64,000 nucleotides of DNA from Oikopleura dioica (GCA_907165135.1 OU015569.1:2976001-3040000); one strand, 5' to 3'. Positions 15,303-20,767 are shown, numbered from the stretch's first letter. A program made the numbers and translations. The notes: generated by a model from the sequence alone, not told the origin.

Positions 15303-17430
15303 ATGGCTGAACCGGGAAACAACGCTTCTAATTACAACGAGAACAATTTTGGGACGGCTACACACGTGTGCATGACGCATTGTCTCATAGACTTTTTTTG
15401 CGATACAGTTTGTTTGAAAACATGTTACGTAACTGTGTAACCGCCAGTAGACTACCGCAACTTTATCCAGCAGGGTGTCCCCATCGCTGGCACCAACGAA
15501 GTCATCGTGAAAAATGAGGAGTTACCTCAGCAACAAGTTCCCATGTGGGACAACGAGCAAACGGCCACGCTGACCGAGTGCAAGGAAGAACCTGAAGATG
15601 AATACATCCCACAGGTCGAGGGATGCTCCAGTAACTCTTTCGCAGCAACCGAGCCTGTGGATCATCCCTCGTAGCCGGTCAAAAATGATGGACAACAAAT
15701 TGTTATCGCCGACGACGACGAGATCGCTCCCAATTACGTGCAGCCAAAGTTTCATCAGCAACAGTTTAACCAGCAACAGCAGTTCCCTCAAATGTTCTAT
15801 CATATGCAAAACAACCAGACTGTCTATCAAGATCAGCAGCATCACTCTGGACAGTGGCAACAACAACAGGCTTGGCAGGCAAGCTTATTTATTCCAATTC
15901 AAATCGAACGTCCTTTTAGCAGCAAACTGGCCATCAATACCAGCAGTATTCGCCTTTTGTTAAAATGGGCCTGCAAAACAGCAATGAACAACTGTTCCAG
16001 CAGTACCATCAGGGACAAGCAACGACAACTTACAGCACAGCATCTTTCAATGCTCAGCATGGACTCAATATGCATCAGCAGGTTAAAACACTACTTTTTT
16101 TTTCTTCAAGGAGTCTCAGCAAGTCCTCTTTTCTAAATAAGATTTAGCAGGGATGCGTGCCTGTTACTAGCCTTCCAAGCTCAAACTTCATGATGAATTC
16201 GCAGACTCAGGTACCGTTCAAAAACTATTGATAAGTGTAAATTGGCTTCAGGGGCATAATTCGTCAGGCGTCCCTATCAAACAAGTCTTTACTAATTACC
16301 AAGGTAATTCTTGCTTTTCATCTGGATGATATTAATTCATCCTCCTAGGGCAGCAGCTATTCGGACAGCAGTTTAATCAAGGCACTCAACCAAGCATCGT
16401 GATTCAATCTCATCCAAATCATGAGATGTTTAGCGAGGGAACTGGCGAGGAAATGTTCACTCTCCAGCCAGCCATGCCCAATCTCAATGCTAGTTATGGA
16501 AACTTCGTTGAAGACCCCTCAAACTTGTCGAATGAAGAAACCACCACGATCAAACAAGAAGATTGTGATGATGAAGAGAACAATGATGAGCCTGCGCTTG
16601 AACTCAGCACAACATTCGAGAACACCAAAGCTATGAAAGACCACGTCTACTATCGTAAACGCCAAACTTTTATCAAAATAAGCAATCAGTTGTTTAGTTA
16701 AGGATTTAATTAACGACCTCGTGCTCCAAACGAAAATTCACGCGAAAAACTCTGGCCGCTATCGAAAAGCCTGTCAGGACCACGACGATATGCTGCCTGA
16801 TGTTGCTTACGCCGAGTGCAAATCTTTATGTTACAAGACACTCCCAGAGGAATCAGAGTTAAAAGATCAAATTAATCTTATATCATTTATCCAATTATTT
16901 ATATTCTATTCTAACTCGGCATAGATGGCCAGGGACCCACCAAAACTAAACGCAACTCAAATGCGCAAGCTAAACAAGGCATTCAACTCCGTAAGTTGAT
17001 AAATTACGCTCGAAGAATACCACTTTCTTTCAGTTGAAGATCAAGGATAAGCCGGAGCTGCCGGAAATGAAAACTGCTCTCAAAGTTATGTGCGAAATCG
17101 GTAAAATCGATGACGGCGTGGAGCAATTGATTGAGGAATTATGTTTGTACTTCTTATAAGACTTATTGAATAGCGTTTTTAGACACACATCCAGAAGGCT
17201 TTGATGCTTACTGGAATATGCTGAACTCAGGTCAAAAGAAGTGGTTCAACAAAAACCGTAGTCTTGAAGAGAACAAGGTGGTTCCCCGCCCTTCACGTAA
17301 AATGGGTCGACCACGAACAACCCCAACCGTCCGACGTTCTCCTAGAGGCAAAAACAAAAATAATAATGCCAAGAACAAGAAGGGAGAAAAAGCTCAAGAA
17401 GATGCTAAAGCTGGTTCAAAGAAGAAGTAA
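15303..17430 (+). CDS. Multi-exon Q-rich/acidic putative nuclear protein with a C-terminal AT-hook-like motif
   Basis: Spliced Q-rich exons (QPKFHQQQFNQQQQFPQMFYHMQNNQ), an acidic segment IKQEDCDDEENNDE, and a basic last exon RKMGRPRTTPTVRRSPRGKNK. No family recognised, and it may be two genes. Confidence 0.5.
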
Positions 17431-17760: not shown

Positions 17761-18680
17761 ATGAAGCTCTCGCTTGCCCTTTTCTCCTCCGTTTTCTGTG
17801 ATACTCTTCCTTACGACACGCAATGCACATCAATCGGTGGTACTTGTACTGATTACAGATATCTAACTTGCATTGCCGGATATGCAACAGGAAAGTGCAA
17901 CGGCGATAACAACAGAAAATGCTGTCTGCCTTGTGATACTAGTTGTCAATTAAAGGTGACGGGAGAAATATATAACTTGAAAAGAGATAAATTGAAATCA
18001 AGGAAGAAAGCGACAGTTTGAACGACGGAAAGTGTACTTCCGCCGGCGGCGAGTGCAAGCACAACACAAACTATTGCAATGGATATTACTCGTCTGGTCT
18101 TTGCGGTGGCGGATCAGCTCGGCAATGTTGTAAAACGGGCTCAACAAACTGCGAGTTGCTCACTTATTCGAACACGTGGGTGAAAGGATACAATGGACTC
18201 ACAGTCAAGATTGATCAGGGATTCAAATCCGCCATGGACACAATGAACAATTACGCGGGACAGTGCGGTGTGACTGTTTATGTTACTCATGCATTCAGAA
18301 AAGAAGGTTCATCCTTACTGTTGACGTCGTAGCGTCATTAAATAATCTAGGACAAGAGATCGGAGGTACAGTTGTGCCACCAGCAAGCCACAGCAACCAT
18401 TTGACTGGCCATGCAATTGACATGAATCTGGACACTCCGAGAGGCTGGTGCAATAGCTCTTGCTTGGCTGCCGAGTCGAACACCAATGCCAAATGCTTCA
18501 CTGATAAGGTACAGATGCTAGCGTAAGCGATTTACTTATTATTTTCAGATTATTGCAAACGCTGGTTTGCGGTGGGGCCAGAGTTTTAACGACCCAGTCC
18601 ACATTGACGATAATCTATGGTACTCGAATTCGAACACTTGGACTGATCTTTACTACAAACATCAAAATTCTTGTTCTTAG
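17761..18680 (+). CDS. Secreted protein with two Cys-rich defensin-like modules and a peptidase M15 (LAS-type Zn D-Ala-D-Ala / L-Ala-D-Glu peptidase) domain
   Basis: Exons 17761-17955, 18003-18306, 18351-18508 and 18549-18680 join in frame with GT-AG introns. Signal peptide MKLSLALFSSVFC. Modules CTSIGGTC..C..G..C....CC and CTSAGGEC..C..GLC....CC. M15 motifs VTHAFR, SNHLTGHAID (H-x6-D) and GLRWGQSFNDPVHID. Confidence 0.85.
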
Positions 18681-18898
18681 TTTCTTCCTGCTCCTGAAAT
18701 TTGAATAGAAACAGACTCGAATCGTTTTATTTCGGAGAAAGTTTCCTCGAAATAAAGACTCTTAATTTTGAGCATGAAATTTATTACGCGGCGGGATGAA
18801 ATTTACGAATTAAAAAATAGAGTCTTACAGTGATAAATAAAAAATAAATGCAGTGATGTAAGAAAATAGTTAAAAAAAAAATAAAAAAGAAGAGATCT

Positions 18899-20767
18899 TT
18901 AGAAATCGAACAAATCGTTGTTCTTCGGAGGGTTGTTTTCTGTTTCTTCACCGATATTGACTATAAAGTGAGTTTCGTTTTGTTCACAGCTGAAATTGTT
19001 TACCTGGCTCTGGGTTCTTGTCAGGCAGCGTATTGAGCCATTCGTTGATGTCTACGTACTGCTGATCGGTGATAACTAAAGATATTCAAAGGTAACTTAA
19101 ATTCTGCGCGCTCGCGATGGTACCTTCTTGCTTCAGAGGAAACTGAGGAGCAGTAGAAGTTGAGGAAGCTGGTGGGGCGTGAAAATGCGCACTTGTAGAC
19201 GGAGCTTGCCAATGCGCACTTGAAGAGGGAGCTTGCCAATGTGCGCTTGAAGAGGGAGCTTGCCAATGTGCACTTGTTGATGGTGCTTCGAAATTGGGAA
19301 ACTGCGGAGCAGCAAAACTGGAGGCAGCTGGTGGAGCATCAAAATGCGCGCTCGAAGACGGAGCTTCAAAATGTGCGCTCGTAGACGGAGCTTGAAAGTA
19401 TGCGCCAGTAGTTGGGGCTTGATAATGCGGCGCACTTGTAGATGGAGTTTCAAAGTTTTGAAACTGTGGAACAGTGGAAGAAGTTGATGGAACCTCATTA
19501 TTTGAATTGCTTTCTTCTAGTTTCACAGCCTAGATTAATAGATATTGACAAGAAGATGAATAGGCACTCTCACTTCGAAGTAAGCCGTCTGTTCGCCTCG
19601 AGAGTTCAAAATTGGCTGGACGACTGTCATTTGACCGGAGAGAAGGGGAAAGTCCGTGATTGGGACCTGAGACTGCATTCCCATTCCGGGAGTAATCGGG
19701 TGGAACTGCGGCTGGATGTTCTGGTGATCGTACTGCTGAATCTCCCATGATGGGGGCTACATTTTGTTGTTATTGATAACTCGGAAATTGATTGTTACCT
19801 GAACCCATTGCTGATTGTTCATTCCATCATGGTGGAAGTATTCTTGATTGTGAGTGGTGGACTCAGTAAGAATATATTCTTCCGCGGCTGGTGGAGCTTG
19901 AAGTTCGAATTGTCTTGTGGGCATGCGATCGGCTGGGTTTGGAGGCTGGTTCAGTTGCTTCTGCTAAAAAAGGACATCAACACTTGCATTGATTTGAATA
20001 AATACCCCGCGGAAGCTATGCTGAGCCTGGGCCTTCTCCTCCTCTGCCACCCTTCGCCTTTGTTCCCTAACTTCCTCAGCCAGTTCAATAGCCTTGGCTG
20101 AGCCGTTTCGGAGAATCCATTTGAGCAGTTCTGGTTTAGCACGCTGGAAGAAGCCGTATTGATGAAGATAGAAGGAGACGTTGTTTGGGTCACTTCCCTC
20201 CTCTTCATTGCGTTTTCTTGAGAGAAAATACGTAAGGAAGGCTTCTTTGGTTTCAGGGATAAATTACCTGAAGCCGTAGAGGTTTAATTGACGGATGAAA
20301 CTAGCAAATTCTTTCGTCTGAATAGGCGCCTTCTCCGCCTTTGGCCGTTGGAGAAATCCCTCGTCGAAAGCTTCGCGCTCGATGACAAAGTATTCCCCAT
20401 ACTCACCCCAGTAGATGAAGGGGTACTCGCTTTCGCTGCTCACAATTTCATAGAGCTTCTGCACAAAAGGCTGGACTCCGTCAGCTGGCTTTGGCTTCTT
20501 TGGCTTTGGAGCGGCAGCTCTTGGCGCAGCGCGCTTTACAGCAGTGGTTTCTCGTCGTTTCACTGGAGCTCTTCTTGGGGAGGCGGAACACGCTTTCGGT
20601 TCCCGAGATTCTTGGGAATCGTTAACTCTGGTTTGCAAAGAACAGAGGCTTACATTAATAATCTTCTCAGACATTCGGATCTTCGCCAACGCTCGTTCCA
20701 TGTGCAGTTTACACGCCAAGGTGAACCGGTCATCATCATCTAACTCGTCTTCTTCGTCGCTCGCCAA
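18899..20767 (-). CDS. Heat-shock-factor-like transcription factor (HSF DNA-binding domain)
   Basis: VQPFVQKLYEIVSSESEYPFIYWGEYGEYFVIEREAFDEGFL..FASFIRQLNLYGFR, then YLHQYGFFQRAKPELLKWILR, matching the HSF DBD. Followed by Q/P-rich exons, 9-aa repeats and an acidic-aromatic C-terminus NDLFDF*. Start codon uncertain. Confidence 0.85.
19140..19480 (-). repeat. Coding 27-bp tandem repeats (APS(S/T)SAH(W/F/Y)(Q/E/D)) in the HSF-like C-terminal region
   Basis: About 10 degenerate copies, e.g. APSTSAHWQ APSSSAHWQ APSSSAHWQ APSTSAHFH, in two blocks each starting F.NFE. Confidence 0.85.

Follow-up and report, generated by a model that had tools for sequence, protein, structure and literature searches.

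A Rusticalin-Like Gene of the Appendicularian Oikopleura dioica Encoding a Putative Secreted M15 Peptidase with Two Cysteine-Rich Repeats

Introduction

Rusticalin-like proteins were described by Daugavet et al. in 2019 (Mob DNA 10:4) as proteins composed of a signal peptide, two cysteine-rich repeats and a C-terminal peptidase of the MD clan (PMC6339383). The repeats were likened both to beta-defensins and to tick carboxypeptidase inhibitor; the peptidase was reported to be close to Ply500, with the catalytic and zinc residues conserved; the family was found in tunicates, cephalochordates, a coral and Trichoplax, and two Oikopleura dioica transcripts were listed, FP744447.1 of 263 amino acids (aa) and GCJN01018270.1 of 260 aa (PMC6339383). 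A horizontal-transfer origin and an antibacterial function have been proposed for these proteins (PMC6339383, PMC7379824). The present study deals with a 64,000-nucleotide stretch of O. dioica DNA (GCA_907165135.1, OU015569.1:2976001-3040000; hereafter, the window, with positions counted from its first letter), and with the gene at 17761-18680 on its + strand, which almost certainly belongs to this family.

The same layout is known in PLys and other animal wall hydrolases, where N-terminal beta-defensin-like repeats are joined to a hydrolase of bacterial origin (PMC12855814, PMC7379824), but in place of M15 these proteins have GH23, phage lysozyme, amidase or M23 as their catalytic domain, and only PLys has been characterised biochemically. 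In many eukaryotes, repeats of this kind occur in fusion with phage lysozyme, zinc amidase or Peptidase M15, and the N-terminal repeats are almost exclusively eukaryotic (PMC7379824). For PLys, a GH23 lysozyme of Trichoplax, an experimental study of 2026 showed that the enzyme gains stability from its N-terminal repeat domain, which is removed as the protein matures (PMC12855814).

Relationship to Rusticalin-like Proteins

The gene comprises four exons and three introns, and its coding sequence of 789 nt, read and spliced by hand, translates into a predicted protein of 262 aa. BLASTP searches with the spliced protein showed 58% identity to the Ciona savignyi protein H2ZDV9 over 248 aa (E 1e-91), 55% identity to a Clavelina lepadiformis protein (P0112; residues 1-261 against residues 2-267, E 1e-91) and 53% and 48% identity to two proteins of Styela clava. 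The architecture is that of the rusticalin-like family, with two repeats of the spacing Cx6Cx6-7Cx8Cx7CC, a complete catalytic set and a length of about 260 aa, and nothing essential differs; the 262 aa fall inside the family range of about 248-271 aa. The calculated mass (26.9-27.0 kDa) and isoelectric point (about 6) are similar, not identical, to those of the published O. dioica entries (27.2 or 26.6 kDa; 5.7 or 6.0), and the window locus may or may not equal one of these two transcripts.

A preliminary description of the locus, made from the sequence alone, had noticed a signal peptide, two six-cysteine modules, an M15/LAS domain with HAFR, SNHLTGHAID and D-x-x-H, and three spliceosomal introns that were taken to speak against bacterial contamination. 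Each of these elements was found where it had been placed; the introns are of the GT-AG type, and the closest full-length relatives are tunicate proteins. The same description considered the gene a candidate for an undescribed system, which it is not, because the architecture, the taxonomic spread, the conclusion of horizontal gene transfer, the antibacterial hypothesis and the presence in O. dioica have been in print since 2019, under the name of rusticalin-like proteins, in papers of 2019 and 2020 (PMC6339383, PMC7379824). What had been rediscovered, accurately, was a member of a family already known, rather than a new system.

A phmmer search with exon 2 against 1.84 billion representative sequences returned 109 relatives at E<=1e-3. 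A search with the best full-length relative led to named animal proteins, all containing PF13539, two of which are called "Peptidase M15C domain-containing protein" in UniProt; the matches come from Styela clava, Ciona savignyi, Clavelina lepadiformis, Plectus sambesii and Oculina patagonica, and further members, from Ciona intestinalis, Branchiostoma floridae and Seison nebaliae, appeared in cluster look-ups. Compared with the published range, the present analysis adds a nematode (Plectus), a seisonid (Seison) and a second coral (Oculina) as hosts of the family. A second copy (paralogue) of the M15 gene was looked for in the window, and none was found.

Gene Structure

The features of the gene are as follows.

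17761-17955, + strand: exon 1, aa 1-65, with the start codon, the signal peptide, the first Cys repeat and the additional cysteines C58 and C62
17761-17802, + strand: predicted signal peptide, aa 1-13/14, within exon 1, by hydrophobicity
17824-17925, + strand: first Cys-rich repeat, aa 22-55, within exon 1, fitting the motif published in PMC6339383
17956-18002, + strand: intron 1, 47 nt, GT..AG, phase 0, after codon 65
18003-18306, + strand: exon 2, aa 66 to the first base of codon 167, with repeat 2, a short linker and the N-terminal half of the M15 domain
18033-18131, + strand: second Cys-rich repeat, aa 76-108, within exon 2
18150 (C115) to 18297-18299 (R164 of HAFR), + strand: N-terminal half of the M15 domain, in exon 2
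18307-18350, + strand: intron 2, 44 nt, GT..AG, phase 1, inside codon 167
18351-18508, + strand: exon 3, aa 167-219, with the putative zinc-binding SNHLTGHAID and the CNSSC pair
18392-18421, + strand: SNHLTGHAID, aa 181-190, with H183 and D190, in exon 3
18509-18548, + strand: intron 3, 40 nt, GT..AG, phase 0, after codon 219
18549-18680, + strand: exon 4, aa 220-262 and the stop codon, with LRWG, DPVH, the C-terminal helix and C261
18591-18602, + strand: putative catalytic DPVH, aa 234-237, with D234 and H237, in exon 4
18751-18756, + strand: possible polyadenylation signal AATAAA, 71 nt past the stop codon, read from the sequence

The list of open reading frames (ORFs) indicates that a stop codon is met if any one of the three introns is retained, and the spliced gene contains no frameshifts or internal stops. 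The predicted splice junctions are supported by colinearity with relatives. At junctions 2 and 3, the spliced protein aligns without gaps to ascidian orthologues, and at junctions 1 and 2, two marine-metagenome relatives, L083 and L084, read straight through with matching residues. Junction 1 (CQLK|EESD) is colinear with the uninterrupted relative in L084; junction 2 (RKE-G-QEIGG) resembles REEGQDLGG of Ciona savignyi and the uninterrupted RKEGQNIGG and RKDGQDLDG of the metagenome relatives; junction 3 (CFTDK|IIANAGLRWG) is colinear with CFLNKVTSSGLRWG of the orthologues.

The Peptidase Domain

HAFR occupies aa 161-164, and R164, H183-x6-D190 and D234-x2-H237 are all intact. The five residues R164, H183, D190, D234 and H237 align with invariant columns of the family, and the R, S-N-H-x-x-G-H-A-I-D and D-x-x-H-I-D-D patterns are kept. 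In the Pfam search, which was done on exon pieces of the window gene, exon 3 alone matched PF13539 (Peptidase_M15_4) with 21.8 bits (E 2.9e-4, profile positions 5-37 of 70; gathering cut-off 25 bits), and full-length orthologues, 48-58% identical to the window protein, scored 40-44 bits, above the cut-off. A hidden Markov model built from 79 bacterial homologues only, taken from GTDB genomes, matched the spliced window protein over aa 128-251 with 134.7 bits (E 1e-43). Neither the exon pieces nor the full-length orthologues matched any Pfam family other than Peptidase_M15_4. The exon pieces had no match in NCBIfam and only a weak one to an endolysin family in PHROGs (phrog_6523, E 0.065); a phmmer search with exon 3 against the PDB sequences gave only chance matches to influenza hemagglutinin (E about 1).

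The LAS fold was assigned by proxy, through an AlphaFold 2 model of the Clavelina orthologue P0112, which has a predicted local distance difference test score (pLDDT) of 89.6. The best PDB matches of this model were Ply500 (2vo9), LysB4 (6akv) and ChiX (5opz), with a Foldseek probability of 1.00; the N domain of Hedgehog came next, followed at lower rank by VanXYc, VanY and VanX. The probability was also 1.00 for Hedgehog N, VanXYc and CwlK; CwlK of Bacillus subtilis was the best match in Swiss-Prot, and DdpX was also among the structural neighbours. Ply500 (2VO9), LysB4 (6AKV), ChiX (5OPZ) and CwlK share with the orthologue model the LAS fold and the H/D/H zinc site, but their identity is only 21-26% and the template modelling score (TM) is about 0.5. 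Judged by its nearest structural neighbour, the window domain would be an M15/LAS enzyme of the L-Ala-D-Glu endopeptidase type.

The bacterial proteins with PF13539 have the same motifs as the window domain, even the CNSxC pair, but they lack introns and defensin-like repeats, and their N-terminal partners are wall-binding or DUF4157 domains.

The Cysteine-Rich Repeats

The N-terminus, MKLSLALFSSVFC, has a mean Kyte-Doolittle hydrophobicity of 2.1 over residues 3-13, and the predicted mature protein is disulfide-rich, with 20 cysteines after the signal peptide. Module 1 (C22-x6-C29-x7-C37-x8-C46-x7-C54C55) and module 2 (C76-x6-C83-x6-C90-x8-C99-x7-C107C108) both fit the published spacing exactly; among the proteins fetched in this analysis, 198 such modules occur in 94 proteins. 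AlphaFold 2 modelling of repeat 2 (aa 73-111), made with 72 aligned modules, predicted a short helix followed by three strands (H2-6, E9-13, E20-23, E33-38) with a pLDDT of 93.8. The Foldseek neighbours of this model include human beta-defensins 1 and 2, AvBD11, crotamine and the tick carboxypeptidase inhibitor, with TM of 0.5-0.6 and E of at least 0.6 throughout, which is non-significant for so short a chain; the search of PDB sequences with a profile of the Cys module gave defensin matches only, and these are non-significant as well (E 3-5). The label "defensin-like" is reasonable but is based on a resemblance of folds. Above the defensins, as the top neighbour of repeat 2, stood 32 residues of Cypridina luciferase (24ne; 31% identity, root-mean-square deviation 1.9), a match that is non-significant too.

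The same repeats are combined with other domains. Among the phmmer matches, protein P0024 carries them together with Amidase_2, and protein P0005 contains four Cys repeats and an M23-like C-terminus, the latter without a Pfam match. The Branchiostoma protein C3YYL0 (P0040), named "Lysozyme g", matches Stanniocalcin and M15_4 and may be a merged gene model.

Origin of the Peptidase Domain

Bacterial ancestry of the peptidase domain, as deduced from the comparison of sequences, is well supported. In tblastn searches, bacterial homologues showed 30-45% identity to the window domain across almost all of it, with E down to 1e-30; for homologues compared over the whole 150-aa domain, the figure is 37-45%. 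To other animal members, the bacterial homologues reach about 50% identity. Their phyla include Chloroflexota, Lentisphaerota, Pseudomonadota, Cyanobacteriota, Bacteroidota and Myxococcota, and many of them carry PG_binding_1, SH3_3 or DUF4157 domains. The preliminary description had spoken of a horizontally acquired or anciently retained antibacterial or digestive lysin; horizontal acquisition agrees with these data, and the antibacterial or digestive role is a proposal, discussed below.

An N-terminal DUF4157 (PF13699) was seen in several of the most similar bacterial homologues (P0116, P0119, P0124 and L023, the last from Geodermatophilus aquaeductus). Its presence hints at secreted effector-like proteins, and not housekeeping wall enzymes, as the closest relatives on the bacterial side.

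The 2019 study proposed Listeria phage A500 as the vector, together with an idea involving attP and a tRNA gene (PMC6339383). This vector is unsupported here because the bacterial homologues are far closer than any phage and there is no tRNA gene nearby. A tblastn search with a single-domain Ciona member against 50,697 phage records gave one weak match, to an Arthrobacter phage endolysin (60 aa, E 4e-5); no tRNA genes were found within 8 kb on either side of the window gene, and the introns, at 40-47 nt, are too short to contain one. Ply500 is the nearest solved structure and not a demonstrably close relative.

A maximum-likelihood tree built from 124 domains places the window protein among the repeat-bearing animal proteins, with a Shimodaira-Hasegawa approximate likelihood ratio test (SH-aLRT) value of 92. 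In the same tree, a branch with 95% SH-aLRT splits 97 bacterial rows from the side containing all animal rows and a few prokaryotic sequences from metagenome-assembled genomes (MAGs). The approximately unbiased (AU) test did not reject one clade for the 15 animal sequences (p 0.457), so that a single origin is allowed, not proven. The prokaryotic records on the animal side are L004, L025, L052 and L064/L065 (Woesearchaeota, Parcubacteria, Azotimanducaceae, Alteromonas); their position could reflect noise from long branches, MAG contamination or transfer in one direction or the other.

A joint scenario, tentative and, taken as a whole, less likely than not, is that the domain came from cellular bacteria possessing M15_4 proteins with wall-binding or DUF4157 tags, not via phage A500, possibly with a single ancient entry into animals; that the appendicularian gene replaced the whole ancestral set of introns; and that the double defensin-like domain serves animal wall hydrolases generally as a removable pro-domain, turning them into zymogens.

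Intron Positions

Shared intron positions in the C-terminal domain were used by the authors of the family description as evidence of a single origin (PMC6339383). Five intron positions, two of which lie inside the M15 domain, are common to the paralogues Ciona P0147 and Clavelina P0016. The three introns of the window gene match none of these five, with offsets of 2-3, 11 and 12 alignment columns and different phases, in a comparison that used these more divergent paralogues, not direct orthologues. The mismatch is read as lineage-specific turnover and as no bar to family membership. Intron turnover is well known in Oikopleura, and the mismatch fits it.

The marine-metagenome relatives L084:499-1252 (ENA ERZ27288795) and L083:80-584 (Tara Oceans PRJEB4352) are 64-68% identical to the window protein in the M15 half. 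They lie on short low-GC eukaryote-like contigs, with introns near aa 97, inside repeat 2, and after aa 214, and with no intron at the sites of introns 1 and 2 of the window gene. These differences suggest rapid gain and loss of introns in this gene among planktonic tunicates.

Proposed Function and Alternative Explanations

It is likely that the locus encodes an intact, secreted rusticalin-like M15 enzyme acting on peptidoglycan; an active peptidoglycan-peptidase function, taken by itself, is probable to a slightly lesser degree. The protein would be secreted and disulfide-rich, and R164 as the Arg binding the substrate carboxylate, H183, D190 and H237 as zinc ligands and D234 as the general base would form the catalytic set. 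Such an enzyme would cleave bacterial peptidoglycan in its stem peptide, with the L-Ala-D-iGlu bond as the most likely target, since the nearest solved folds are those of Ply500, LysB4, ChiX and CwlK, and it might act in antibacterial defence and/or in the digestion of filtered bacteria. The double repeat may target or permeabilise the bacterial envelope, or it may be a stabilising or inhibitory pro-domain removed on maturation.

Several points weigh against this assignment. The bond specificity is taken solely from structural neighbours of 21-26% identity and TM of about 0.5, and the model compared is that of the orthologue and not of the window protein itself. Relative to the family consensus, the window protein has RWGQ for RWGG, a two-residue deletion before DPVH and DDNLW for DDGLN. 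The Pfam score of the exon 3 piece lies under the gathering score, because intron 3 splits the profile and the remainder lies in exon 4. A marine oligo-dT metatranscriptome run contains 6% of the sampled words from the gene region, a weak sign of expression and the sole trace of transcription at the locus; enzymatic activity of any animal member is absent from the literature found.

An active M15 enzyme of another specificity, that is, a D-Ala-D-Ala carboxypeptidase or dipeptidase of the VanY/VanX type, or an enzyme with a substrate other than peptidoglycan, seems improbable. Pfam describes PF13539 as D-alanyl-D-alanine carboxypeptidase, and VanXYc, VanY, VanX and DdpX are structural neighbours as well, but the highest-ranking neighbours, whether solved structures or reviewed entries, are all L-Ala-D-Glu endopeptidases (21-26% identity against 13-19%), and close bacterial homologues carry PG_binding_1 or SH3_3, which are typical of lytic enzymes. 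A little less probable still is a protein without hydrolase activity in vivo that has kept its zinc site and serves as a signalling ligand or as a sensor binding peptidoglycan, in the manner of Hedgehog N or the truncated Styela rusticalin. The latter is without the last 40 or so residues, which correspond to exon 4 of the window gene, and cannot be active (PMC6339383); Hedgehog N, the second group of structural neighbours, keeps a similar zinc centre, and in the divergent paralogues P0015 and P0016 the motifs are partly lost (NNY for SNH, PSR or PLH for PVH). The window protein, however, retains all five catalytic and ligand residues as well as a complete C-terminus, its place is among the conserved orthologues and not the degenerate paralogues, and its identity to Hedgehog is only 13-16%. 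Bacterial contamination or a dead pseudogene is practically negligible as an explanation: the peptidase domain is indeed 37-45% identical to bacterial proteins, but three GT-AG introns splice to one uninterrupted frame, the N-terminal repeats are of the eukaryotic kind mentioned above (PMC7379824), the closest full-length relatives, with 55-58% identity, are from tunicates, and the flanking DNA is ordinary intron-bearing eukaryotic sequence.

A further proposal concerns only the repeats and is compatible with the hydrolase assignment: the double repeat might be an intramolecular pro-domain, clipped on secretion, so that the gene would encode a zymogen. We consider this a genuine possibility, with the odds somewhat against it. 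The same class of repeats stabilises PLys of Trichoplax and is truncated in its mature form (PMC12855814), and the nearest two-module structure, the tick carboxypeptidase inhibitor, is itself an inhibitor of a metallopeptidase (PMC6339383). The repeats of the P0112 model are connected to its M15 domain through a Gly/Ser linker of low confidence (residues 113-116, pLDDT below 50), and secreted versions without repeats exist in Ciona (P0058) and in a coral (P0120). On the other hand, the short linker of the window protein, KTGSTNC, shows no evident cleavage site, and beta-defensin-like modules are antimicrobial in many animals.

A Hedgehog-type signalling domain was considered and rejected on account of the low identity, the absence of any Pfam match beyond M15_4 and the lack of a Hint domain. 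Hedgehog N has the same LAS/Hedgehog-DD-peptidase fold and zinc centre, but only 13-16% identity in structural alignments, and the window protein has no C-terminal Hint domain, its chain ending 25 residues past DPVH. Among the findings that the preliminary description had named as speaking against its proposal, a grouping with Hedgehog was not observed; Hedgehog ranked below the L-Ala-D-Glu peptidases, and the window domain groups with bacterial M15_4 enzymes. As for widespread vertically inherited orthologues of known function, this finding applies by half: orthologues are indeed widespread (tunicates, amphioxus, corals and placozoans), but a tested function is on record for none of them.

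The rusticalin-like peptidase is among the clearer cases of a bacterial wall hydrolase domesticated by animals and given a eukaryotic cysteine-rich front end, in a host that lives by filtering bacteria-sized particles. Because assays of animal members are absent from the literature found, it is a sound choice for biochemical study of bond specificity, of behaviour as a zymogen and of the place of expression. The contribution of the present analysis is the shift of emphasis from a phage vector to bacteria and the notice of intron turnover. The immune repertoire of Oikopleura is reportedly reduced, as Denoeud et al. are said to have found in 2010; if the repeats were indeed a pro-domain and the protein a zymogen, such an enzyme would be a main antibacterial or digestive effector in Oikopleura.

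Neighbouring Features

An ORF at 17218-17430 (+), with a very basic Lys/Arg-rich tail, ends 330 nt upstream of the start codon of the M15 gene. Operons are common in Oikopleura, and the two genes might form one. The next ORF downstream, at 19086-19526 (-), is highly repetitive and rich in Ser, Ala and Pro, with repeated "APSTSAHWQAPSSSAH" units.

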